Assembly (NCBI GenBank): GCA_965644315.1 | Contig: CBFFRQ010000074.1 | Coordinates: 1 to 64,000 of the forward strand | Source: Caecitellus pseudoparvulus | Lineage: Eukaryota > Protista > Bigyra: Bicosoecida | Direction of reading: 5' to 3' | Length of the DNA: 64,000 bases | Part shown: piece by piece, positions 2,966 through 35,600 of the stretch | Numbering within the stretch: position 1 is the stretch's first letter | Layout of the letters: the number at the start of each line of letters is the position of its first letter | Position numbers and translations under genes: made by a program | Notes under the pieces: model-generated | The model's database searches: none | The model's input: the letters and a program-made list of their open reading frames with translations, nothing else | Told to the model about the DNA's origin: nothing

Positions 2966-3679
2966 GCGATCCCAGCTCATATGTGGCAACAAAGAGAGGA
3001 CTTCGTCGCGCAAGCTGCGCGTGATGCAGTGTGGACTGGCACCAGCACTCGACCAGCGCGACGAGCTTTGCTGTTGATGAGATCTAGTGCTGCGAGGCAG
3101 GCGCGAGGAGAGGTCCGACTTCTTCACCTCGCCACGCTCTTCCCTCTCGCTCTCTTTCAAAGTCCCCCAGCACTCGTAAAGTGTCCTGCAGTGAGGATCA
3201 GCACTCTGTTTCCATTCTTGAACTGCATTAAAGACTTGCTTTTGCCCAGTACTTTGAACTTGGTATTCTGCAGTCTTTCAAGGCACGCCAACCATGTGGA
3301 GTGCACACATGTTCTCATTGCCAAACACCCCCAAGTAGCTTGGAACGTCACAGAGACGTGGATCGTGCAAGCCAGCATCATCGCATTTGTCCATCGCTGT
3401 GCAGTACACAAAGAAGAGCTCCACATCTTCTGGTCGAGAGATGGAGTCAATGAAGGTGGCAGCGCGTCGCCCATCTTCGCTACAGGATCCGGCGCTGACC
3501 GTCGAGGCCTCCGCTTCAGCCTCCAGCACTTTGCGCAAATGCTCTTGCAGTTCCGACCTGTGCTTAGGGTCCACAATTTCAGGCCGCATGCTGAGCACAG
3601 GTTGACCACCTTCGTTCCTGCGGATGTGGCCTGGGACAGCAACTGGGACGCCAAAGCTCCACAGAACACTGCTCGCTAA
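2..3679 (+). CDS. Ankyrin-repeat protein with highly internally conserved 38-aa repeats (5' end outside window)
   Basis: 26 tandem units like EVDVHAADGDGPEAAFRxACxxGHTDIVRDLLxLTGAR (ankyrin core AC..GH.DIV..LL), then a short cap (..AVWTG..ARRALLLMR). The frame stays open to 3679, but the part after ~3110 is antisense to the next gene and may not be functional. Confidence 0.88.
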   Translation, partial: EVDVHAADGDGPEAAFRKACANGHTDVVRDLLGLTGAREVDVHAACWSRPEAGFRKACKAGHLDIVRDLLGLTGAREVDVHAGDRRGPEAGFRWACRNGHTDIVRELLALTGARAVDVHAAAWGRPEAAFRGACANGHTDIVRELLGLTGAREVDVHAADGDGPEAAFREACANGHTDIVRKLLALTGAREIDVHAADRHGPEAAFRNACANGHTDIVRDLLVMTGVREVDVHAACWSRPEAGFRKACECGYAAIVSQLPGLTGARAVDVHASCWSRHEAAFREACANGHTDIMRELLALTGVREIDVHAADRHGPEAAFREACANGHTDIVRDLLALTGVREVDVHAADGDGPEAAFRDACANGHTDIVRDLLVMTGVREVDVHAADEEGPEAAFRNACANGHTDIVRDLLVMTGVREVDVHATNRHGPEAAFRKACANGHTDIVRELLALTGVREIDVHAADRHGPEAAFRYACANGHTDIVRDLLGLTGAREIDVHAADRHGPEAAFRDACANGHTDIVRDLLVMTGVREVDVHAADEEGPEAAFRNACANGHTDIVRDLLVMTGVREVDVHATNRHGPEAAFRGACTRGHTDIVRDLLALTGARAVDVHAAGGDGSEAAFRYACFMGHTDIVRDLLGLTGARTVDVHAADEEGPEAAFRWACANGHTDIVRDLLGLTGARTVDVHAADEDGPEAAFRYACANGHTDIMRDLLALTGAQAVDVHAADGDGPEAAFRRACRNGHTDIMRDLLALTGAQAVDVHAADGDGPEAAFRKACFIGHTDIVRDLLGLTGAREVDVHAANGSGPEAAFRNACFMGHKDIVRDLLALTGARAVDVHAADGDGPEAAFREACANGHTDIVRDLLGLTGARAVDVHAADGSGPEAAFRNSCEYGHKDIVRELLALTGARAVDVHAANGSGPEAAFQVACKAGHLDIVRDLLGLTGARAVDVHAADEDGPEAAFRGACANGRTDVVRELLALTGQRAIPAHMWQQREDFVAQAARDAVWTGTSTRPARRALLLMRSSAARQARGEVRLLHLATLFPLALFQSPPALVKCPAVRISTLFPFLNCIKDLLLPSTLNLVFCSLSRHANHVECTHVLIAKHPQVAWNVTETWIVQASIIAFVHRCAVHKEELHIFWSRDGVNEGGSASPIFATGSGADRRGLRFSLQHFAQMLLQFRPVLRVHNFRPHAEHRLTTFVPADVAWDSNWDAKAPQNTAR

Positions 3680-6600
3680 GCTTCCCAGCTTCGGCTCAGC
3701 ATGGCCCCATAGCTCTGCCCTCTCTCCACTGCTGCAGCTCAAGGCCATTGTTTGGGCGAGATGGCCAGGCTGGACATGCCAAGATTCATCTGCAATGAGC
3801 CTCAAGAAGCGCATGAGCGAGCCAGAGTTGAGGAGCTCTGCTGCCTCGACATCTCTGACGTCACTCTTCAAGTTCTGGAGAGGCTGGAGGTCGGTCTTGA
3901 ATGACAGTGGCGCTGTGGTCGTGACCAAGAAGCAGATTTGGAGTCTGTCGCGGCCATCCCGCTTGGCGCGACGAAAGACGACAAAGTCGAGGTTGGGGAA
4001 CGCCTCGTGCATCTGGACAGTGTGGACGCCGTCCACTGGGAGCCCATGCAGCGCAGCAATGTCGGTGAAGGCAACAGTGTTTATGCCCTTGTTATCTAGA
4101 CGGGGAGAGTCTCGCATACGGCGGAGCTGCAGGAACCCCGAGCATCGTTGGGGGGTGAGGGCCCAGTTGCCCAGCATCTGCTCTGGCGTCGGTCCGCCTG
4201 CAATGGACAGCTGGTCATACTGCCCACCGAACAGCCCCATCTTGAGGAGCATTGCAACACACATAGAATACTGCTGATCGTGTGCAAAGTCTGGCACAAC
4301 CGCAGCCAATTGCTGCATCGCTTGACTTAGCTCATCTTTGGCGTACAGGTACAGTTGCTTCTGACTTCTTTCGGTCTCGAGCAGGGCTTCAATCAATGTC
4401 TTGAAGCCTGTGTACGTCGAGCATTGTGTGTTGCCAGCGAGGTCCATGTCCAGCGGGTTCTTGCGTTGAAGAACGTAAAAGCTCATCAACATGCCAGCGC
4501 TCATCAGCTGCGGGTAGACAGTCGCATCTGCCCCTTTGGCAATGCGTTGCTTGACATGACGTGTCAGGAAACCACCCAAGCGGAGCGATTCGCCCTCGAC
4601 CAACTGTTTGAAATCCTCGACCACCTTGTCCTTGGTGTGCGAATGCAGGTCGCAGAGCGGTACAAGTTTAATCAGCATCCGGGGTTCTGCTGCAACATGC
4701 TTGACGAACTTGTGCAGCTTGGAGAGGACGTCGGGATCAGACGACAGATTCTTGTGGTATCTCCTTGACCACATGAAGTCAGTGACCGTTCCGACCGGCG
4801 TGTTTTCAAGCGTGTCTTCTTCATGCTTGCCAGGGCTCGTGTTTGGGGCCTGTCCACACAACAAGTGCATCGCCAAGTTGTGAGAGAAGTTTCCCAGTTC
4901 CATGAACGTGTTCCGCATGTCCGTACGAGGTGGAAACTTGAAGAACTCCTTCCTGTCTTTCTTTCCGAAATCGCTCAGACGGTGAACCTCTGGGCCGTAC
5001 GCAATCACTTTGTTGCATGGGTCAGCCCACGTCAGGAGCTGCTGCACCACTTGCCAATGTTTGGTATCCCTCGTGCCACGTTCCTCCAGCAGCTCCTCGT
5101 GAAGGAAGAATGCGTTCTTAACAATCATCATTCGGGGCGGGGCTCCGGTTTCGCCTCGTTTAGCAGTGTAGTGTCCCTTGGTTGGGTGGAGCAGCTTTGC
5201 CAACGCCCGCCAGCGCGTCGCGCTGTTCTCCAACTCCCCAAACAGTGAATGCAGCTCTTCACTGACAAGCGCCTCCCCGCATGAGTACCCAAGGCCAAAT
5301 TCAGCCAGATGGCTGCCCAGGGACAGCATGCTGCGAGACAGAGAGCATGCAGATGGAAAGAACAACAGGTCACCACCGGCTCCCACAGTGAGCATCAAAG
5401 CGAGAGCTTGCAAAGTCGCAGTTTTGCCAGAGCCAACAGGGCCAGTGACCAACAGCCCGTGTCTGTCGGGTTTGGGAAGTTCTATTGCTCTGGACAGGAT
5501 CTGTGCTCGTTGGGGTGTCAGGACAAAAGTCATGAGCCCCAAGCGGTTGGAGCGGCCTGCGTACTCCTTGCTGTCCCATACAACTCCGCCAAAACCAACG
5601 GGGAGAGGACGAAGATTAAAGTCGCCTTCAGAATAGGCGACGCGGCAAGAATCATTTCCTCCATACGGGTGAGAGGGAAAGAATTCCGAGTACGGCAACC
5701 GCAGCACCACAGCCTCCAGTTTGCCATCCACGACTACAGGTTGGCAGCCAGGAGTCCACAGGTCGCCGAGCTCATCCGCCAAACCCTCGGCAAGGTGGTT
5801 TGGTGTAGGATCTGCACTTTCTGGATCGGTGAGCATGCTGAGCTTGTGCAGGAGGGGCCAAGCTTTGGGGTCACGGGCGAGGAACGCTTGCTCTGTGTCG
5901 CGCAGCCAGCCGAAGTTGTCCCGGATCATGTCCAGTTCAGCCACGCCAAGCCCTTCGAACAGTCTGCTGACATCCTCTTTCGAGCAACCAAGTATCTGCA
6001 GGGCCGGGGGCACTTGCAGCTCGCTTGGGCTTTCTCCTGACAGGCTTGCCTGGATCAGCGCTCGCAGGGTGACTGCGGAGTTTGCCACAGTCGGAGCTGG
6101 GTACAAAGTACTCCAGCTCCACTTGTTGCATGGCTGTTGCCTGGCAGGCTTCAAGTGGTTGCGAATAAACGTTTTCCACAGGTCAGGGCTCACGCTGTGT
6201 GGCCCACTGTCAGAAGCAGCGGCCAGCTCAGAAAGCGACCTCCAGCCACCGTTCCGAAGGCAATGTTGGAGTGTGTCGAGGAAGCGAGCACCAATTAATC
6301 CTCCAACATCTGGGGGAGCAAAGAGGCGGAAAGCTGCGCCCAGTACGTTCGGATCCAGAAGGGGGAGGACGTGGGAGACGCCTCCCGGTGCCTGTACGTT
6401 CCGAGAAGCTGGGTGTACGGGAGCGTGCTGCGCTGGGCATTGCTGGCACACGCACCGGGCTGTGAACGAATGCGTGCTTGACAGTTAGCTTTGCTGCATC
6501 ACAGCAAGAACTTGCGTCCAGCTTGGACAGTGCCTCTTTCAGCCTTTCTTGCCCGCCCAAGCCGTATTTGGCGGCACACTCAAGCACGGCGGCTTGGTCA

Positions 6601-7369
6601 ACACCGTGCATGCTCGCGAGCTCTGCAGCATACAGGGCAGCGCGTCGAGCTGCAGGCTGTAGGTTCATGAATGCCTCCGTGTTGAATGCTGGAGTCTCTG
6701 CGTTGTGCGGCTCCCTTGTGCCGCAAGGTTCAGCCATAGGGCTCGAGTCCCACAGCACAGCTCCGTCTGGCCCAAGGAAGGCTAACAAACACGCCTCCAG
6801 CCCGCCCAACGCTGCCACGAGGGATGTGTTTACGGTGTCATGGCACATCACGCTCCCGATGAAGGCTGGTGACATCAGCTCGCATGCAGCATCAATGCAC
6901 GGGGGTGCGGCCTGTGCACAAACAAACACACCCGCCGCTCGTGACGCTCGCCATCCCCAAGTCGCGCTCAACGCGACGCACGCACCTCGCACTCCGCCAA
7001 CACGCCCAGCGCCACCTCCACAGCTTGACCGTCTGCCGCACTCGACTCCAGCGCATCCACTGCGCCCGCCAGACGCAACTGGTCACTTCCGCTCAGGGCT
7101 CCCCACCACGATACACCCTCCAGCCGTGCCCGCCACACCCCGCCCCCCTCGCCGCTCGCAGCCTCGCCCTGCCCACTGCCCGCCACACTGCTCAGTGACA
7201 AGCGAGCAGTGAGCACTGCTAAGGGGTGCGGCGCGGGCAGGAGTGCCGGCACAGCTGCTGGTGTGGCTGCGCCAACTTCCGCCCTGCCACCACGCAGGCA
7301 CCGCCAGCGCGGCCGCCCTGCAGCCTGACATGCCCTCACAAGTCTTGCAGTGTGCAACATGATTGGCAT
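3278..7369 (-). CDS. Crinkler/RHS(CR)-type P-loop NTPase + restriction-endonuclease-fold protein with mitochondrial-presequence-like N-terminus (~1317 aa; exons 7369-6986, 6911-6456, 6391-3278)
   Basis: Phase-0 GT-AG introns 6985-6912 and 6455-6392 join three ORFs in frame. Walker A LLVTGPVGSGKT, AEPRML after the NTPase, and REase-like HEAFPNLDFVVFRR..LQICFLVTT. The leader MPIMLHTARLVRACQAAGRPRWRCLRGGR is Arg-rich and lacks acidic residues. Confidence 0.72.
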
Positions 7370-7472
7370 GGGTGTGAAGTGCCTCCCCTGCAGTGCGGGG
7401 AGGAGGCGCGATTGCAGGCGGTGTTGTTGTGTCTTGAGGCACTCTTTGCCAGTGAGTCACAGGTGAAACGCA
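6886..7472. repeat. Direct repeat copy A (~587 bp): 5' flank + exon 1 + intron 1 + first 9 codons of exon 2
   Basis: Aligns by eye with 9791-10374, from GCAGCATCAATGCACGGGGGTGCGGCCTG to GAGTCACAGGTGAAACGCA, with scattered substitutions. Confidence 0.95.
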
Positions 7473-8146
7473 AGGCCTTCCGCTTCTGACAGTACGGCAG
7501 GCTGCAGGGCCGCGCAACGCCGCAAGCACATGGCGATTCTTGTCATTTTTCGTGGTGAGTGGTGTTCATGTGGACCACCTTGACACACAGTTGGCTGCTG
7601 TGGAGCGCTCCCCTGGTCGTACGGACTGAGCATAGTGGCAGTTCCACGCATGGTGGCAGTTCCACGCACGTGGGCAAGCCTGGAGGCTGCATTTTCGAGT
7701 ACGTGCAAAGGCATGGTAAGGTGGCAATAAAGTGCGACTCTTTTGCGCTACAAGCGATACGTGCTCCACGCAGCCCAGCGCCAATCTGCGCGTGCCCCAT
7801 GACCAAGGACACACGGATTGATATTGGCGGGTGCCATCAAGCGGTATGAATGCAGAAGTCGGTTCCATTTCCTTGAAGGCCTGTAGAATCAGTGAACGCC
7901 ATCCGGGGATGCAGGCGCCGTTCACGGATAGTCATCACTCCCACCTGCCCCGCAAGAATGCCGTGCGGTTCACTCAGCAGAGCAGCGCGGACCAACACAT
8001 GCGTTGACAGCAGCGAAAGGGTTGTCAGTGCCCACTTCCTTCCACAATACTCTGCTCTTTGCCACCACTTGGATAGGCTATCGTTGCACCAAGGGGCTAC
8101 AATGTGCGCTGTGAACGCCGACCCCTAGCCCTCACGTGCATCTACG

Positions 8147-10274
8147 CTAGCCTCCGCGCAATGCATGCTTGAACTTTACGAGAAAATCGTTCCAAGTGTG
8201 GTACTCCTTCACGTAGACCGGGGGAAAGCGGTCGTTTGGGGCCGCCTCAATCCCATCGATGCTCCTTCTCATGCAAAAGTGCAGGAAGCCCTGCAGGTCT
8301 TTGCCTCCAGCGCCTTCAATGGTTTCAGACTCCCAGAACTTGCAAACAGTCCTCAACACCTGCTGCGTAAGCAGTGCCTGCACCGTTTCCGCATTCACCG
8401 ATCCCTGCGAAAGGAGCATTCGCTGATGTTCCAGCTGCGGAAGCCACGCGAGTTGCACAGCCCTGGCTCACGCACCGCTGTCTGCACAAAAGCGTGCTTC
8501 GCCATGAGCACCAAATTTTCGGCGAATGATGAGTTTTCCAGATTCGCGATCGCTTCGGCGACGCGTTTCCTCTCTGGCTCCGGGAGTCGTTGCAGGGTTG
8601 GGTGCAGCAAGGCTTCAACATCTGGCCGAACTTGAGCAGCTCTGACCGTCACCCAAGCCCACTTTACCTGAAGGTCAATATATTCCCTGCTCCACCGCCC
8701 CCGAAACCAGTCGGGATCAGCTCCATCAATCGAGAATGCAAGCGTTCCGTGCATGTCATGCAGGAGACGCCCAAGGTCAACGCTGAATACATGCTTAAAA
8801 AGCTCGACCAGTCCCGGATCCACATCCCCAAACGGCGCCTTGAAGTCAACCAGTCTTGCCAGTGAGGAGAGCACTTCGGGGTGGAATACTTGCTCCAGTG
8901 TCTCAACATTCACTGTCCCCTGCGAGCGAAGCAGTGCAGCAATCCTGCGGCACACTGCGAGCGTGTCGTGGCAAGTCGCAACGCACTGGAGTCTGCACGA
9001 AGGCCAACTTCGCCATGAGCGTGGCTGACTTGTGTTCTCCTGATTCTTCCATGGCTGCAATTGCTTTGGCAGCCCGTGTCCGTTCTGGCTCTTGAAGTCG
9101 CTGGAGGGCTGGCTCCAGCTGGGCTTCAACCTCTGATCGTATTTGTGCAGCTCTGATTCTCGCCCATCGATCCTTCAGCTCTTCAGACAGAGTGTGTTCA
9201 ACAAACGAATCCCAATACTCTCCAATGGGCTTAGGTGGCGCAACGAAAGCCCCAAGGTGAATCTCAGCGAGTAGCTCAGTGAGGCTCTTCCCTGAACAGT
9301 GGACCCGCAGATCCCGAAAGAACTTGTCCACGATGTCAGAGTTGGAATGCTTTTCAAAGCAAGAAGGCAAACCATCCAGCACGTCATAAGAAAGGAGCAC
9401 ACAAAGGACCTCCTCATCCAGCGGCTCCTGTGGCACGGTTGGTCCTGGAGGAATGCCCTCGGTAGCGAGAACGGTGCAAGTGTCGCCTCACTCCACACCT
9501 TCTCGTCGTGAAGAGCCTGGCGCATCCGCGATAACATTGCTTCATAACGAGATAGCTTCCTGCGGGGAGATCTTCGTCGCGAGAGCAACAAACTTTGGCG
9601 AAGCAACGCATCAACCTTCGCCTGGCCAGGATGCCGCACGGGCTGCGATGCGTCGCCGTACAGATCTGGCGTGCCTGCGAGGCAAGTGCCCACAAACAGC
9701 CGAAGATCATCCTCCCATCCAGAGGAGCGGCCGTAAGCTGAAAAGGCTTGGGAGTACAGCTGAACCCTGGAAGGCTCCAAGGTGAGGAGAGCAGCATCAA
9801 TGCACGGGGGTGCGGCCTGCGCACAAGCATTCACACCCGCCGCTCGTGACGCTCGCCATCCCCAAGTCGCGCTCAAGGCGACGCACGCACCTCACAACCC
9901 ATCAACACACCCAGCGCCACCTCCACAGCTTGACCGTCTGCCGCACTCGACTTCAGCGCATCCACAGCACCCGCCAGCCGCCTCTGGTCACTTCCGCTCA
10001 GGACTGCCCACCACGAAACATCCTGCAGCCGCGCCCGCCACGCCCCGCCCTCCTCACCACTCACAGTCTCGCCCTGCCCACTGCCCGCCACACTGCTCAG
10101 TGGCAGGCGAGCAGTGAGCACCGCTGCGGGGTGCGGCGCGGGCAGGACCGCCGGCACACCTGCTGGTGTGGCTGCGCCAACTTCCGCCCTGCCACCACGC
10201 AGGCGCCGCCAGCGCGGCCGCCCTGCAGCCTGGCATGCCCTCACAAGCTTTGTCGTATGCAGCATGGTTGGCAT
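8147..10274 (-). CDS. Uncharacterised helical-module protein (~614 aa) sharing exon 1 with the 3278-7369 gene (exons 10274-9891, 9816-9499, 9427-8987, 8919-8476, 8404-8147)
   Basis: Four phase-0 GT-AG introns (74, 71, 67, 71 nt) join five short ORFs in frame. Exons 3 and 4 end in homologous RAAQ.R..VEA.L.P.LQRL.EPER.R.A.AIA..E.S......LMAK.AFVQT. Confidence 0.7.
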
Positions 10275-10374
10275 GGGTGTGAAGTGCCTCCCCTGCAGTG
10301 CGGGGAGGAGGTGTCGGTGCCGGTGTTGTTGTGTCTAGAGGCACTCTTTGCCAGCGAGTCACAGGTGAAACGCA
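9791..10374. repeat. Direct repeat copy B (~584 bp)
   Basis: Second copy of 6886-7472. Confidence 0.95.
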
Positions 10375-10656
10375 GGGAGGACACTCAATGTACGTGCGTC
10401 CTTTGTGGCCAGCCTCAAAAATCAGGAGATCCCTTGGCATACCAAGCCGCTTCCTCGTCTCACTGCAGGAGGACACAAGTGCGCCCCATTCTCGGCCTGC
10501 TCCTGCCAGTTTCACAGATGCGGCAAGCTTTCTCCACACCAACCACTGCGGCGTGGTGGCCCCACGCACTGGCATTCAGCAGCCAATGTCACATCATGCT
10601 CCAGACTTGATCAAAGGTGTGTCTTTACTTCCTGGGCCCCCCTTCCACCCCCAGCC

Positions 10657-28496: not shown

Positions 28497-31400
28497 ATGG
28501 CAGGGGCCTCCTTGTTGGCAGAGGGCGGGGCTCAGCCGACCAGCCCAGCGTCGGCTGTGCTGCTGCCAGCCGCCAAGGCGATGCAACGAGTGCTCCTTGC
28601 AGCGCAGCTGCCCACTGTTGCCTTCCCCGCCCAAGAGGACTTCCCTGTCAACGCATCCAGCCTGTCTGACATGCTGCTGTTCTTGGCAAATCTCCTGAGG
28701 GGTGTCGCCGACATTGGTCCCGGGGAGCAGGGCCAATTTCCGCACCCAACGGCAGCAGAGCGGCTGCTGAAGCGGTGCATCAAGGGCTTCCCACAGGCTA
28801 AACTGCTGCAGATGGAGATATCGCGACATCTACTTGCCAATGGCATCCAGATGTACATGCATGACTCCCGTGTGGGGGCAAGCAGCCCCGGCCGAGCACG
28901 CCACAAAGCAGCAGCGCGACAAGCCGTCCACCTGCTCGAGTGGCCGCCGCTCAAGCATGCAGGGGCACAGGCTACACCAGCTGCCGAAGCTAATCTGAAG
29001 GCACTGGTGCACAGCGTATTCAGCCACCTCCAGCCTCGCTCCCCAGGGGCCGCCTCGCCCCCGCAGCTGACGCTACTGCCTAGCCAGTGGGAAACAGAGC
29101 TCATTCCGGCCTTGTCCGCGACGGCGGGGAGTGGCCCAAGCCCCCAACGCAGCCCAGAAGCCGTGAGTCCACCTGCCATTCCCCGAAGGGCTGTGGCGTC
29201 AGGCGGTGCCGACCAGCAGCAAGCTGCTGCGCCGGCCAAGCGCCTTGCTGCGCTTGAACCGTCAGGCCAAGCCAGCATTTCCCATGCCGCGTTCGAAGAG
29301 GCAGTCGCAGATGCAGTTCAACGCACAGAAACTGCGGCATGGAAAGCACACGAAGATCGCGTTGAGCGCCTGCAAGCCTCGCATGCTGCAGAGCTTGCAG
29401 CCGTGCGGCAGCAGCTCACGCAGCAGCACCGCAGCGCCCTCGAAAGCCACACCCAACGCGCAGTGCAAGAGGCTAAAGCAGAGTGGCAGGACTCAATCAC
29501 TGCCGCCCAAGACCAAGTTCACACCCTTCAGGACCTGCTCCGAAAACGGGAGCAACAGCGTGCGGCAGCGGAAGCTGCGCACCGTGCAGCCTCTGACACT
29601 GACCAAGCCATCATCAAGCGCCTGCAAAGCGACCTGGTGGAAGCCACACAGGACCTGAAACTGGCAAGTGGTGAAGCTCAAGCCCAGGCCAAACTTGTCG
29701 CACCCCTGCGCAGCCGCTGCGAAACCCTTGAGGCAGCACTGACTAGGGCTCAAAACAAGCTGACAGCCCAGCAAGAAGCCGAGCGTAGTTTGACCGACCG
29801 ACTCCGAGAGCAAGAGCACTCCACAGACTCCGCAAACGCTCGCTGCCGCCGGACAGAGGCTGAGGTATCCAGACTTCGGCGTGCAGTTGCAGTAACCCAA
29901 GCGGCTTTGGAGCGCAAGTCGCAAAGCCTGCTGGCGGCGCAAGAGTTTGCTGCAACGCAGAAAAAGGCGGCCGCCTTGAAGGCTGAGCTCTTGGACAGTG
30001 CCCAAGCGAAGTTGACCTCAGCCTCCCAGAGCGCCGCAGCCGCGCAGGCTGAAGTCGACCAGCTTCGCCAAGAGCTGGAGGACGTCAAGAAACGTGCTGC
30101 CAGCGCTACGGCTGCCGCAGAGCGCATGCAGTCCTCGCACCAGCAACAAGTCGAAGACTTGGAGCAGTCTTGGCAGCAAGCGTTGGCGACTACAAGGGCA
30201 GAACTCGATCAGGCCGTGAAAGGGGAAGCTGCTGCAAAGGACAGACTTCAAGACTTGCGACTTTCTTTCTCGGCAGTGTCGCAGCACCGGGACGAATTGA
30301 CGGAGGAACTGGCTGAGTGCAAGAAAGCAACTGAAACTCTTGAACACCGCTTGCAGCGAGCAGCACAAGCAGAAGACCGCTGCTCCAAACTAAAGCAACA
30401 GCTTGACCAAGAGAAGCAGGCTGCCACGCAAACCAAGCAATCCCTCGCTGAGGCGTACTTGCAACAGCAGCAGCTGGAATTGCTCGCCCAAAGCCACAAG
30501 CAAGAATCCCAAAAACTTGTCGCAGAGGCTGACAAAGCAAGGACAGAGAAAATGCGGCTCGCAGCTGAGCTTGAGCGCGTGCAAGAACACCTCCAACAAG
30601 AGCTAGCCCACCGCAAACAGTCTGAGCAGGCTGTGCTTGACCTTCGACAGTCGCTCGCAAAAGCGCATACCGCCTTGAAAACTACCGAACTAGAATTGAA
30701 GCGTCTGCGGGGTGTGGTGTCTGAGGCTGAGGCGGGTCGGGCAGAGTCCGAGGCGGAGGTGGAGCGTCTGCGGGGCGTGGTGTCTGAGGCTGAGGCAGGT
30801 CGGGCGGAGTCCGAGGCGGAGGTGGAGCGTCTGCGGGGCGTGGTGTCTGAGGCTGAGGGGCGTCTGGCTGCAGCTGCTGAGTCTGAGGCGGAGGTGGAGC
30901 GTCTGCGGGGTGTGGTGTCTGAGGCTGAGGGGCGTCTGGCTGCAGCTGCTGAGTCTGAGGCGGAGGTGGAGCGTCTGCGGGGCGTGATGTCTGAGGCTGA
31001 GGGGCGTCTGGCTGCAGCTGCTGAGTCTGAGGCGGAGGTGGAACGTCTGCGGGGTGTGGTGTCTGAGGCTGAGGCAGGTCGGGCAGAGTCTGAGGCGGAG
31101 GTGGAGCGTCTGCGGGGTGTGGTGTCTGAGGCTGAGGCAGGTCGGGCGGAGTCTGAGGCGGAGGTGGAGCGTCTGCGGGGTGTGGTGTCTGAGGCTGAGG
31201 GGCGTCTGGCTGCAGCTGCTGAGTCTGAGGCGGAGGTGGAGCGTCTGCGGGGCGTGGTGTCTGAGGCTGAGGCGGGTCGGGCGGAGTCTGAGGCGGAGGT
31301 GGAGCGTCTGCGGGGCGTGGTGTCTGAGGCTGAGGGGGGTCGGGCGGAGTCTGAGGCGGAGGTGGAGCGCCTGCGGGGTGTGGTGTCTGAGGCTGAGGCG

Positions 31401-34400
31401 GGTCGGGCGGAGTCTGAGGCGGAGGTGGAGCGTCTGCGGGGTGTGGTGTCTGAGGCTGAGGGGCGTCTGGCTGCAGCTGCTGAGTCTGAGGCGGAGGTGG
31501 AGCGTCTGCGGGGTGTGGTGTCTGAGGCTGAGGGGCGTCTGGCTGCAGCTGCTGAGTCTGAGGCGGAGGTGGAGCGTCTGCGGGGTGTGGTGTCTGAGGC
31601 TGAGGCGGGTCGGGCGGAGTCTGAGGCGGAGGTGGAGCGTCTGCGGGGCGTGGTGTCTGAGGCTGAGGCGGGTCGGGCGGAGTCCGAGGCGGAGGTGGAG
31701 CGTCTGCGGGGTGTGGTGTCTGAGGCTGAGGGGCGTCTGGCTGCAGCTGCTGAGTCTGAGGCGGAGGTGGAGCGTCTGCGGGGTGTGGTGTCTGAGGCTG
31801 AGGGGCGTCTGGCTGCAGCTGCTGAGTCTGAGGCGGAGGTGGAGCGTCTGCGGGGTGTGGTGTCTGAGGCTGAGGGGCGTCGGGCGGAGTCTGAGGCGGA
31901 GGTGGAGCGCCTGCGGGGTGTGGTGTCTGAGGCTGAGGGGCGTCTGGCTGCAGCTGCTGAGTCTGAGGCGGAGGTGGAGCGTCTGCGGGGCGTGGTGTCT
32001 GAGGCTGAGGGGCGTCTGGCTGCAGCTGCTGAGTCTGAGGCGGAGGTGGAGCGTCTGCGGGATGTGGTGTCTGAGGCTGAGGGGCGTCTGGCTGCAGCTG
32101 CTGAGTCCGAGGCGGAGGTGGAGCGTCTGCGGGGTGTGGTGTCTGAGGCTGAGGCGGGTCGGGCGGAGTCTGAGGCGGAGGTGGAGCGTCTGCGGGGTGT
32201 GGTGTCTGAGGCTGAGGCAGGTCGGGCAGAGTCTGAGGCGGAGGTGGAGCGTCTGCGGGGTGTGGTGTCTGAGGCTGAGGGGCGTCGGGTGGAGTCTGAG
32301 GCGGAGGTGGAGCGTCTGCGGGGTGTGGTGTCTGAGGCTGAGGCAGGTCGGGCGGAGTCCGAGGCGGAGGTGGAGCGTCTGCGGGGTGTGGTGTCTGAGG
32401 CTGAGGGGCGTCTGGCTGCAGCTGCTGAGTCTGAGGCGGAGGTGGAGCGTCTGCGGGGTGTGATGTCTGAGGCTGAGGCAGGTCGGGCGGAGTCCGAGGC
32501 GGAGGTGGAGCGTCTGCGGGGCGTGGTGTCCGAGGCTGAGGCAGGTCGGGCGGAGTCTGAGGCGGAGGTGGAGCGTCTGCGGGGTGTGGTGTCTGAGGCT
32601 GAGGGGCGTCTGGCTGCAGCTGCTGAGTCTGAGGCGGAGGTGGAGCGTCTGCGGGGTGTGGTGTCTGAGGCTGAGGGGCGTCTGGCTGCAGCTGCTGAGT
32701 CTGAGGCGGAGGTGGAGCATCTGCGGGGTGTGGTGTCTGAGGCTGAGGGGCGTCGGGCGGAGTCTGAGGCGGAGGTGGAGCGTCTGCGGGGTGTGGTTTC
32801 TGAGGCTGAGGCGGGTCGGGCGGAGTCTGAGGCGGAGGTGGAGCGTCTGCGGGGTGTGGTGTCTGAGGCTGAGGCGGGTCGGGCAGAGTCCGAGGCGGAG
32901 GTGGAGCGTCTGCGGGGCGTGGTGTCTGAGGCTGAGGCGGGTCGGGCGGAGTCTGAGGCGGAGGTGGAGCGTCTGCGGGGTGTGGTGTCTGAGGCTGAGG
33001 CGGGTCGGGCGGAGTCTGAGGCGGAGGTGGAGCGTCTGCGGGGTGTGGTGTCTGAGGCTGAGGCGGGTCGGGCAGAGTCCGAGGCGGAGGTGGAGCGTCT
33101 GCGGGGTGTGGTGTCTGAGGCTGAGGGGCGTCTGGCTGCAGCTGCTGAGTCTGAGGCGGAGGTGGAGCGTCTGCGGGGTGTGGTGTCTGAGGCTGAGGGG
33201 CGTCTGGCTGCAGCTGCTGAGTCTGAGGCGGAGGTGGAGCGTCTGCGGGGTGTGGTGTCTGAGGCTGAGGGGGGTCGGGCGGAGTCTGAGGCGGAGGTGG
33301 AGCGTCTGCGGGGTGTGGTGTCTGAGGCTGAGGCAGGTCGGGCAGAGTCTGAGGCGGAGGTGGAGCGTCTGCGGGGTGTGGTGTCTGAGGCTGAGGCAGG
33401 TCGGGCAGAGTCTGAGGCGGAGGTGGAGCGTCTGCGGGGTGTGGTGTCTGAGGCTGAGGCAGGTCGGGCGGAGTCTGAGGCGGAGGTGGAGCGTCTGCGG
33501 GGTGTGGTGTCTGAGGCTGAGGCAGGTCGGGCAGAGTCTGAGGCGGAGGTGGAGCGTCTGCGGGGCGTGGTGTCTGAGGCTGAGGCGGGTCGGGCGGAGT
33601 CTGAGGCGGAGGTGGAGCGTCTGCGGGGTGTGGTGTCTGAGGCTGAGGCGGGTCGGGCGGAGTCTGAGGCGGAGGTGGAGCGTCTGCGGGGTGTGGTGTC
33701 TGAGGCTGAGGCGGGTCGGGCAGAGTCTGAGGCGGAGGTGGAGCGTCTGCGGGGTGTGGTGTCTGAGGCTGAGGCGGGTCGGGCGGAGTCTGAGGCGGAG
33801 GTGGAGCGTCTGCGGGGTGTGGTGTCTGAGGCTGAGGGGCGTCTGGCTGCAGCTGCTGAGTCTGAGGCGGAGGTGGAGCGTCTGCGGGGTGTGGAGTCTG
33901 AGGCTGAGGCGGGTCGGGCGGAGTCTGAGGCGGAGGTGGAGCGCCTGCGGGGTGTGGTTTCTGAGGCTGAGGCAGGTCGGGCGGAGTCTGAGGCGGAGGT
34001 GGAGCGTCTGCGGGGTGTGGTGTCTGAGGCTGAGGCAGGTCGGGCAGAGTCTGAGGCGGAGGTGGAGCGTCTGCGGGGCGTGGTGTCTGAGGCTGAGGCG
34101 GGTCGGGCGGAGTCTGAGGCGGAGGTGGAGCGTCTGCGGGGTGTGGTGTCTGAGGCTGAGGCGGGTCGGGCAGAGTCTGAGGCGGAGGTGGAGCGTCTGC
34201 GGGGTGTGGTGTCTGAGGCTGAGGCGGGTCGGGCGGAGTCTGAGGCGGAGGTGGAGCGTCTGCGGGGTGTGGTGTCTGAGGCTGAGGGGCGTCTGGCTGC
34301 AGCTGCTGAGTCTGAGGCGGAGGTGGAGCGTCTGCGGGGTGTGGTTTCTGAGGCTGAGGCAGGTCGGGCGGAGTCTGAGGCGGAGGTGGAGCGTCTGCGG

Positions 34401-35600
34401 GGTGTGGTGTCTGAGGCTGAGGCAGGTCGGGCAGAGTCTGAGGCGGAGGTGGAGCGTCTGCGGGGCGTGGTGTCTGAGGCTGAGGCGGGTCGGGCGGAGT
34501 CTGAGGCGGAGGTGGAGCGTCTGCGGGGCGTGGTGTCCGATGCGGACTCTCATTTGTCGTTTTCAGCCCAGGCTGAGGTGGAGCGTTTGCGTGGGGTTGT
34601 GGCTGAGTTGGAGGCTCGCCTTGCTACTGTTGCTGATACCGAGGCGGGTGTTGAGCATTGGCGAAGAGTTGCTTCCGACGCTGATTCACGTATGCTCGCC
34701 GTAGCACATGCGGAGATAGATCGACTTCGCGGAGTGTTGAGTGAGGTCGATGCCCGGTTTCAAGCAGACCTGGATTCTGCGTATTTCAGTGCTGCGCAGG
34801 ATGCCCGTTCGGAGTGCAGTGTCTTGCTGCAGTCTGTCGCTGCATTTGTCCATACCAACATGGACCACCTCGAAGCAACACTGCATGCTTCTGTTGGTGC
34901 CCAAGAGGCCCAGCTGACCGGTATGCGTGACACGGTTGAGGCTCTTGCCCAACGTGTAGCAGGGCAGCCTCAGCCTTCAGGCCTTCAGGCGCCCCCATCC
35001 ACCCCAGATCGCCCACCACCGCTAGCAGGCGCAGGTAAGACACCGGCGGGGTATGCTCTTAGGTCCCCTCCAACCTTGAGATCGCGAGAAGATCGGTTGC
35101 TGTCGCCATCCCTGCCCATGAGGCAGCCGGCAGTACTTCACTCTCCGCAAGCAGCAAACGGAGCCCCCGCTCCTGGAGGCCAGGAAGAACTTGCCGGGGA
35201 GCGCAGCAGCGACGACGTGTACGACGAAGGCGGAGAACATGCAGGCTCTGCAGAGCAGGGGAGTGGCATGCCTGGTGTGGCTTCCTCGCCAGGTGGGTCA
35301 GGTGGGTGGCGGCCTGCCCCACACGCCGAGCAGCGGTCACCTGGAGCTGCAGAGGCGGCTGCCTCGGATGCACGGACAGTGGGATACCAGATGCAGCTCG
35401 ACCAAGCAAAACTTCAACGGGCCCACTTTGGTGCGAGGCATGCTGACGTCCTCGCCTCGACACGCCAAGTGCTGAGCGCAGTCAGTCCAGGGCGGTGGTC
35501 CCAGCCCCAGGCTCTGCCTGGAACAGTGGAGCCTGTTGACTACGTGGAGGGCGTGAGCAGCGTGGGCAGCTTGAGTTCAACTGACGATGAGGACGCTTGA
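28497..35600 (+). CDS. Giant coiled-coil protein (2367 aa) with internal tandem array
   Basis: Uninterrupted ORF with E/Q/A/L/R/K-rich heptad segments and a ~1280-aa repeat block. Confidence 0.8.
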   Translation: MAGASLLAEGGAQPTSPASAVLLPAAKAMQRVLLAAQLPTVAFPAQEDFPVNASSLSDMLLFLANLLRGVADIGPGEQGQFPHPTAAERLLKRCIKGFPQAKLLQMEISRHLLANGIQMYMHDSRVGASSPGRARHKAAARQAVHLLEWPPLKHAGAQATPAAEANLKALVHSVFSHLQPRSPGAASPPQLTLLPSQWETELIPALSATAGSGPSPQRSPEAVSPPAIPRRAVASGGADQQQAAAPAKRLAALEPSGQASISHAAFEEAVADAVQRTETAAWKAHEDRVERLQASHAAELAAVRQQLTQQHRSALESHTQRAVQEAKAEWQDSITAAQDQVHTLQDLLRKREQQRAAAEAAHRAASDTDQAIIKRLQSDLVEATQDLKLASGEAQAQAKLVAPLRSRCETLEAALTRAQNKLTAQQEAERSLTDRLREQEHSTDSANARCRRTEAEVSRLRRAVAVTQAALERKSQSLLAAQEFAATQKKAAALKAELLDSAQAKLTSASQSAAAAQAEVDQLRQELEDVKKRAASATAAAERMQSSHQQQVEDLEQSWQQALATTRAELDQAVKGEAAAKDRLQDLRLSFSAVSQHRDELTEELAECKKATETLEHRLQRAAQAEDRCSKLKQQLDQEKQAATQTKQSLAEAYLQQQQLELLAQSHKQESQKLVAEADKARTEKMRLAAELERVQEHLQQELAHRKQSEQAVLDLRQSLAKAHTALKTTELELKRLRGVVSEAEAGRAESEAEVERLRGVVSEAEAGRAESEAEVERLRGVVSEAEGRLAAAAESEAEVERLRGVVSEAEGRLAAAAESEAEVERLRGVMSEAEGRLAAAAESEAEVERLRGVVSEAEAGRAESEAEVERLRGVVSEAEAGRAESEAEVERLRGVVSEAEGRLAAAAESEAEVERLRGVVSEAEAGRAESEAEVERLRGVVSEAEGGRAESEAEVERLRGVVSEAEAGRAESEAEVERLRGVVSEAEGRLAAAAESEAEVERLRGVVSEAEGRLAAAAESEAEVERLRGVVSEAEAGRAESEAEVERLRGVVSEAEAGRAESEAEVERLRGVVSEAEGRLAAAAESEAEVERLRGVVSEAEGRLAAAAESEAEVERLRGVVSEAEGRRAESEAEVERLRGVVSEAEGRLAAAAESEAEVERLRGVVSEAEGRLAAAAESEAEVERLRDVVSEAEGRLAAAAESEAEVERLRGVVSEAEAGRAESEAEVERLRGVVSEAEAGRAESEAEVERLRGVVSEAEGRRVESEAEVERLRGVVSEAEAGRAESEAEVERLRGVVSEAEGRLAAAAESEAEVERLRGVMSEAEAGRAESEAEVERLRGVVSEAEAGRAESEAEVERLRGVVSEAEGRLAAAAESEAEVERLRGVVSEAEGRLAAAAESEAEVEHLRGVVSEAEGRRAESEAEVERLRGVVSEAEAGRAESEAEVERLRGVVSEAEAGRAESEAEVERLRGVVSEAEAGRAESEAEVERLRGVVSEAEAGRAESEAEVERLRGVVSEAEAGRAESEAEVERLRGVVSEAEGRLAAAAESEAEVERLRGVVSEAEGRLAAAAESEAEVERLRGVVSEAEGGRAESEAEVERLRGVVSEAEAGRAESEAEVERLRGVVSEAEAGRAESEAEVERLRGVVSEAEAGRAESEAEVERLRGVVSEAEAGRAESEAEVERLRGVVSEAEAGRAESEAEVERLRGVVSEAEAGRAESEAEVERLRGVVSEAEAGRAESEAEVERLRGVVSEAEAGRAESEAEVERLRGVVSEAEGRLAAAAESEAEVERLRGVESEAEAGRAESEAEVERLRGVVSEAEAGRAESEAEVERLRGVVSEAEAGRAESEAEVERLRGVVSEAEAGRAESEAEVERLRGVVSEAEAGRAESEAEVERLRGVVSEAEAGRAESEAEVERLRGVVSEAEGRLAAAAESEAEVERLRGVVSEAEAGRAESEAEVERLRGVVSEAEAGRAESEAEVERLRGVVSEAEAGRAESEAEVERLRGVVSDADSHLSFSAQAEVERLRGVVAELEARLATVADTEAGVEHWRRVASDADSRMLAVAHAEIDRLRGVLSEVDARFQADLDSAYFSAAQDARSECSVLLQSVAAFVHTNMDHLEATLHASVGAQEAQLTGMRDTVEALAQRVAGQPQPSGLQAPPSTPDRPPPLAGAGKTPAGYALRSPPTLRSREDRLLSPSLPMRQPAVLHSPQAANGAPAPGGQEELAGERSSDDVYDEGGEHAGSAEQGSGMPGVASSPGGSGGWRPAPHAEQRSPGAAEAAASDARTVGYQMQLDQAKLQRAHFGARHADVLASTRQVLSAVSPGRWSQPQALPGTVEPVDYVEGVSSVGSLSSTDDEDA
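30702..34537 (+). repeat. Coding minisatellite of interspersed 63-bp and 72-bp units (~58 units)
   Basis: Core GAGTCTGAGGCGGAGGTGGAGCGTCTGCGGGGTGTGGTGTCTGAGGCTGAG, followed by GCRGGTCGGGCR (AGRA) or GGGCGTCTGGCTGCAGCTGCT (GRLAAAA). Confidence 0.97.

Follow-up and report, generated by a model that had tools for sequence, protein, structure and literature searches.

The closest described relatives of the genes reported here are the Crinkler-RHS (CR) proteins, whose tail consists of a CR-NTPase, a helical region and a CR-REase (Zhang et al. 2016, as given in PMC5289972), and whose described members are exported effectors or nuclear proteins. CR-ATPases have been grouped with S29/Dap3, and inactive STAND domains have been proposed as sensors (PMC8195603). 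A parallel by analogy only is provided by the OPR-RAP/NCL proteins of Chlamydomonas and by FASTK, helical-repeat proteins that end in an endonuclease-like domain and show tandem duplication; the RAP domain is endonuclease-like, and the NCL genes are tandemly duplicated (PMC13126933). Here we describe two tandem minus-strand genes, A and B, of the free-living protist Caecitellus pseudoparvulus, located in a window of 64 kb (the whole stretch of DNA analysed, positions 1 to 64,000 of contig CBFFRQ010000074.1, below C74). We propose, with a probability of about 0.45, that A and B are maintained members of a lineage-expanded, CR-type (Crinkler/RHS-like) family of STAND NTPase-nucleases, and that they act as an imported sensor or adaptor (A) and regulator (B).

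Like the CR proteins, members of this family join an N-terminal, alpha-helical header to a STAND-type NTPase and REase, and the family is expanded and recombining, with pseudogenes, in a free-living eukaryote. Unlike in the CR proteins, the header opens with a presequence-like leader, its helical module recurs from 0 to 6 or more times through duplication of phase-0 exons, there is one tail type only, with many tail-less members, and the catalytic sites are eroded in gene A's clade. The joining of one header to diverse unrelated toxin domains was not observed, the same tail following 24 of 29 headers. The family also differs from the oomycete and fungal CRN effectors (PF20147) in having no Ubl/LxLFLAK header, since Pfam gave no match on any header or module exon and the model of the module is all-helical. 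We conclude that the family probably belongs to the CR class at the level of the tail, to which it was assigned by motifs and fold. The features of the two genes, all on the minus strand, are as follows.

6886 to 7475, minus strand: shared (gene-converted) block, gene A copy, by sequence comparison
6986 to 7369, minus strand: gene A exon 1 (header), 128 codons, likely start at 7360
7193 to 7360, minus strand: gene A leader, presequence-like
6456 to 6911, minus strand: gene A exon 2 (A2), 152 codons, copy of the module (E 1.7e-6)
3278 to 6391, minus strand: gene A exon 3 (A3), 1037 codons plus stop, half module, STAND NTPase, helical region and REase-fold domain
6137 to 6391, minus strand: first 85 codons of A3, first half of the module, counterpart of B5 (E 4e-8)
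4622 to 5920, minus strand: gene A STAND/CR-type NTPase domain, limits approximate
3401 to 4279, minus strand: gene A PD-(D/E)xK/REase-type domain, limits approximate
3224 to 3229, minus strand: AATGCA hexamer, candidate poly(A) signal, 48 nt past the gene A stop
9791 to 10377, minus strand: shared (gene-converted) block, gene B copy, with 5' flank, exon 1, intron 1 and the first nine codons of exon 2
9891 to 10274, minus strand: gene B exon 1 (header), 128 codons, leader plus last third ('b' half) of the module, likely start at 10265
10098 to 10265, minus strand: gene B leader, presequence-like
9499 to 9816, minus strand: gene B exon 2 (B2), 106 codons, divergent first half of the module (E 1.2e-4)
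8987 to 9427, minus strand: gene B exon 3 (B3), 147 codons, full module (E 7e-12)
8476 to 8919, minus strand: gene B exon 4 (B4), 148 codons, full module (E 2e-10)
8147 to 8404, minus strand: gene B exon 5 (B5), 85 codons plus stop, first half of the module (E 5e-8)

A preliminary description of the locus had read the two genes as a common header spliced to different, mix-and-match payloads. We found instead that a single helical exon module of ~147 codons is present, as a full copy or as a half, in every post-leader exon of A and B, which rules out unrelated payloads in the two genes and leaves the presence or absence of the same tail as the sole variable. A2, B3 and B4 carry the same helix motif at their ends, before the splice donor. 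The E values listed above were obtained for B3 and B4 with a profile of independent modules from other contigs, and for A2, B2, B5 and the first 85 residues of A3 with an enlarged module profile. The end of the header exon matched the module at E 8e-4 directly and at 2e-6 via other first exons; with columns shuffled, neither the header end nor B2 or A2 gave an E value below 0.09 (the shuffled minimum for B2 was 0.22). All genome-wide searches were made in a 30.6-Mb eukaryotic assembly, with spliced genes searched exon by exon and many module arrays placed by coordinates only. They returned 106 module matches, spaced at ~510 nt in arrays whose first exon is typically a second half of the module and whose last exon is a first half. 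Because the body exons are homologous to the module and the arrays are bounded by half modules, these alignments establish the plan of the genes as a leader plus second half-module, n whole-module phase-0 exons and a first half-module, followed by a stop (B) or by the NTPase-nuclease (A). By the same alignments, gene B is a tail-less, module-only member with the architecture of gene A minus its tail, and its exon 5 stops at the point where the NTPase would begin in gene A. Similarity between A and B does end abruptly at the DNA level, as had been claimed, but not at the protein level, where the downstream exons are distant homologues. The predicted model of B4 is all-helical, with two lobes linked by a long helix and a predicted local distance difference test (pLDDT) score of 79, and a fold search with it gave no convincing structural relative (best Z 5.8). 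Exon 2 of the distant clade starting with MSLKAA, and the start of the NTPase exon in that clade, showed no link to the module (E 0.18).

The locus is part of a real multigene family. The close header occurs seven times in the assembly, not just twice, and the arrangement of B followed by A is repeated on another contig (C196). Using a header profile, we found 29 intact header exons, 24 of which have the same NTPase-nuclease exon within 1 kb downstream; of the others, three lead to B-type exons, one leads to a tail-less gene of short length, and the last runs into a contig end. The leader exon is thus common to genes with and without the enzyme tail (24 versus 4 headers), as first described, and no third payload type was found behind the 29 intact headers. 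The NTPase-nuclease tail itself is present at no fewer than about 37 loci. Tail-less genes lie directly upstream of or beside tail-bearing genes at C74, C196, C54, C38 and C67, where the sequence was read, and the same adjacency was seen by coordinates at C32, C26 and C93. The B-type gene on C32 has ~30% identity and its own, very different header. Outside this genome, the header profile matched 53 representatives among 1.8 billion, none of the 10 looked up carrying a name, and a word search for close relatives gave two metagenomic matches only.

Degenerate copies were also observed. In pseudogenes on C150, C53, C148 and C115, an internal deletion of ~3.6 kb, duplicated afterwards, has fused the start of the header (~90 codons) to the end of the tail (~70 codons). 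Copies of gene A on C87 (2-3032) and C109 (22226-25340) have a frame break in the last exon, and are either pseudogenes or assembly errors.

In the tail, the family consensus includes a Walker A motif, an IxDE Walker B motif and an A-x-S-P-D motif, together with a nuclease signature, E...FPxxD...ExT-x-S-x-L-x-x-H...VY, whose residues are kept in 36 (E), 47 (D), 36 (E) and 42 (H) of the 52 rows of the family alignment. The predicted model of A3 residues 98-1030 (pLDDT 82; predicted template modelling score, pTM, 0.82) has a REase region in alpha-beta-beta-beta order. When this model was compared with the PDB, mitoribosomal mS29/DAP3 and archaeal STAND ATPases ranked at the top (Z 10-12, root-mean-square deviation about 4 Å), with 257-289 residues aligned to mS29/DAP3 and RNA12-type folds at Z 10.3-12.2. 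Since CR-ATPases have been placed beside S29/Dap3 (PMC8195603), mS29 as the top match is expected for a CR-type NTPase. In an Atlas shape search a Crinkler cluster ranked first, over residues 1-833, with both domains covered and 415 residues aligned (TM 0.46 by target). Matches to a Crinkler cluster and to an ATPase+DUF234 cluster spanned the REase region, which was folded and searched as part of A3, and language-model neighbours included Crinkler clusters at 0.92. Pfam gave sub-threshold P-loop matches only on the tail, PDB sequence searches gave nothing of use, and a viral fold search gave generic AAA+ only. Motifs and predicted fold support the assignment of the tail as a Crinkler/RHS-type STAND NTPase with a PD-(D/E)xK domain.

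The mS29/DAP3 and RNA12-type STAND NTPases are thus like this family in having the closest solved fold to its NTPase domain, and mS29 is mitochondrial. Unlike the family, mS29 is single-copy, without a REase domain or module array. Identity of the family with mS29 was ruled out by the lack of a PF10236 sequence match, by the multi-copy state of the family, and by the genome's own mS29, which lies elsewhere and has nothing but the P-loop in common with it.

The preliminary description had proposed a Crinkler-type NTPase-nuclease in gene A, and the fold of a CR-type NTPase and REase holds, but the catalytic motifs are eroded. Walker A is intact (GPVGSGKT, 5420-5443), while Walker B reads IVKN (5114-5125), with K-N in place of the family's D-E. 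In the nuclease, the FPxxD aspartate is kept (3986-3988) and the family's two glutamates and histidine are replaced by S, V and K. The change at the ExT position is common to gene A's clade, whereas only this copy has the altered Walker B, and most family members have the full catalytic set, the C137 and C46 genes being examples of intact paralogues. Because Walker B and three of the four nuclease residues are lost, gene A is most likely a pseudo-enzyme, unlikely to be active as a nuclease or ATPase.

Genes A and B have one block in common, which measures 590 nt as expected from the earlier estimate (~590 bp), is 90.3% identical, ends nine codons into exon 2 and has no third copy within the window. 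Synonymous divergence (dS) was compared within and between this tandem and the second B-A tandem. The A and B headers differ by a dS of 0.19 within C74 and 0.07 within C196, while between C74 and C196 dS is 0.26-0.28 for the header exons, 0.40-0.51 for the A body and 0.57-0.87 for the B body. Since the A and B headers are closer within a locus than same-gene headers or tails are between loci, these values show that gene conversion homogenises the promoter, leader exon and first intron between the old paralogues A and B. Recombination at the header boundary had been suggested before, and the dS pattern fits it. Similarity ends sharply after AAPPCIDAA because the conversion tract ends there; this motif is confined to the A/B clade and other clades begin exon 2 differently, so that it is not a family-wide breakpoint or hotspot. 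The ratio of nonsynonymous to synonymous divergence (dN/dS) is 0.24-0.48 in all exons, including the leader and the B exons, and this range in every exon shows purifying selection on both genes, which are thus maintained as proteins.

The splice model of A and B, with six phase-0 introns as originally described, is supported by conservation across header exons. Each of the six introns runs from GT to AG, with lengths of 74 and 64 nt in A and of 74, 71, 67 and 71 nt in B. An in-frame GT closes every one of the 14 header exons that were read, including those with as little as ~30% identity, and an in-frame YAG precedes the second exon wherever this was read. The extent of the 128-codon first exon stands, but its start has to be moved: the C87 copy has AAG at the position of the first ATG, and for this reason the second ATG (MLHT; 7360 in A, 10265 in B), which leaves 125 codons, is the likely start. 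The AATGCA hexamer downstream of gene A is found at the same spacing, 47-48 nt past the stop, in two paralogues.

To evaluate targeting, the leaders were compared with those of PDH-E1a, citrate synthase and BCKDH-E1a from this genome. Within the first 25 residues, gene A has 6 R/K and gene B has 7, neither has any D/E, and the hydrophobic moment of the A and B leaders, 0.72-0.76 (0.76 in gene A), equals or exceeds that of the three native leaders (0.47-0.75). The leader of gene B runs for ~56 residues up to an SSVAG boundary. Three divergent clades have an acid-poor stretch of 50-60 residues that stops at RH|ASS, RF|AST or RFF|SHS, with acidic residues thereafter; R-x-x-S/A-S-type motifs such as RH|ASS are typical processing-peptidase sites, and the site of the A/B clade, ARLSLSS, is less canonical than those of its paralogues. 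The same Arg-rich, acid-free character is seen in leaders whose sequences are barely or not at all similar (C11, C95, C67 and C32B). The leader is therefore presequence-like, as the preliminary description had it, in that composition and moment match three native mitochondrial controls, with a simple composition test that is passed by 0.6% of the family's internal coding windows and by 16% of random ATG-started frames in the GC-rich window. A signal peptide was ruled out, the hydrophobic core being no stronger than in the control presequences. On these sequence properties we lean towards mitochondrial import of A and B. Separately, an A-E/D-hydrophobic-G/A motif is kept at about residue 28-32 in divergent leaders (RAEVG, GAELA, TAEYA, AAELA, RADFG).

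In the reading that we favour, the leader would be a cleavable mitochondrial presequence, and if so, A and B would be co-expressed and imported together. The module array would form an interaction or sensing surface and the NTPase an oligomerising, ATP-driven switch, which in the intact paralogues would license nuclease attack on foreign or selfish nucleic acid within the organelle. Gene A would serve as a non-catalytic sensor or adaptor, and gene B as a module-only regulator or decoy, comparable to the CARD-only proteins, which tune NLR complexes. As in iSTAND and CARD-/PYD-only regulators, a switch protein with eroded motifs stands beside a partner consisting of the N-terminal module alone; unlike in those regulators, the module is not a death-fold match. 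Several points weigh against this reading. The module is without known fold or ligand (the fold search and Atlas features gave nothing of use), the structural scores of the tail are moderate, with the Crinkler cluster at the TM value given above, and a physical interaction between A and B is something we purely infer. Besides the background pass rate of 16%, acidic, non-presequence N-termini were found on C54 (341000-349200), C44, C32 (786 kb) and in the SRR24000141 relative. Because some members start acidic, import is not family-wide, which suggests organellar and non-organellar branches in the family.

These same observations bear on the possibility that A and B belong to an ordinary CR/RHS-like family that works in the nucleus or cytosol, with giant viruses or mobile DNA as possible targets, and whose leader is a basic, low-complexity header that owes its likeness to a presequence to GC-rich codons. 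Known CR proteins are nuclear, some plant ones having been proposed to act against intracellular invasive DNA (PMC5289972), and both the background pass rate and the several members without leader character would fit. However, the pass rate of the family's internal coding windows is very low, R-x-x-S/A-S-type motifs close the acid-free stretch in three divergent clades, and the leaders on C11, C95, C67 and C32B are alike in property despite their dissimilar sequences, all of which make a nuclear or cytosolic family unlikely.

Ranking next, and rather improbable, is that the proteins are mitochondrial gene-expression factors. On this view they would be imported, would consist of helical repeats and a degenerate nuclease fold, and would bind or process RNA or DNA of the mitochondrion, diversifying in parallel with its genome like the organelle-addressed OPR-RAP/NCL and FASTK proteins. 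The layout of leader, helical repeats and nuclease-fold end is the same, with an organelle address predicted here, the solved fold that comes closest is that of mitoribosomal mS29, which binds RNA, and the catalytic residues are dispensable in gene A's clade. OPR-RAP and FASTK proteins are nevertheless without an NTPase, and their repeat is 38 residues against an exon-encoded ~147 here; no sequence homology was found, nor any OPR, PPR, RAP or FAST match in Pfam. The limited likeness of the family to the genome's own mS29, the full catalytic set of most members, and the many broken copies and deletion derivatives, which suggest fast birth and death, also argue against such a role. Finally, gene B and the shared header could have arisen neutrally, through unequal crossing-over in a recombining cassette, or the family could be a selfish mobile element. 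This alternative would fit the duplication of the cassette with its convergent ankyrin gene on several contigs, the four internal-deletion pseudogenes and the two frameshifted A copies, but is very improbable given the dN/dS of the B exons, with frames and splice sites intact at dS up to 0.87, the diverged B-type gene on C32 and the recurrence of tail-less genes in other subfamilies, although no search aimed at element ends or target-site duplications was made.

A wider extension of import and regulation by A and B, which we regard as doubtful, is a mitochondrial surveillance system in a free-living protist, in which dozens of nuclear-encoded, fast-evolving, imported STAND switch-nucleases with variable module arrays would be tuned by the co-imported pseudo-enzyme A and module-only B, their promoter and import signal matched by gene conversion. 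In the literature searched, the founding CR paper apart, there was no report of an organelle-addressed CR family. If import is true, it becomes testable whether eukaryotes operate defence or cytonuclear-conflict systems of the NLR/CR kind in the mitochondrial matrix; if it fails, the family would be one more lineage-specific CR expansion, with a new helical header. Regardless of import, a header domain without known fold grows by symmetric exon duplication, and selection keeps module-only genes beside full-length ones.

Other features were observed in and around these loci. No telomere array was present in the window or in the other loci examined. An ankyrin-type array with a 38-residue repeat (window 5-~3100, plus strand) is convergent with gene A. 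The same ankyrin gene also lies tail-to-tail with A on C196, C109 and one metagenome contig and at the deletion-derivative loci, and because this pairing recurs, the gene is a passenger of the same duplicated cassette. On C115, downstream of the ankyrin gene and near the cassette, a 714-codon frame encodes a P-loop protein of a different family (GPRGIGKT, VFVDE), and on C53 (L019, oriented 5440-3650) a 597-codon open frame, which may be transposase-like, adjoins the deletion-derivative locus. Between two family genes on C87 (L012:5312-8854, minus strand) lies an 1181-codon frame of a second and less closely related NTPase-REase subfamily, marked by a long coiled-coil repeat of K/E/A; further members may be represented by weak matches on C101, C106, C107 and C136. 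Elsewhere in the window, at ~30500-35000, there is a long tandem array of a 63/72-nt repeat with strong GC skew.

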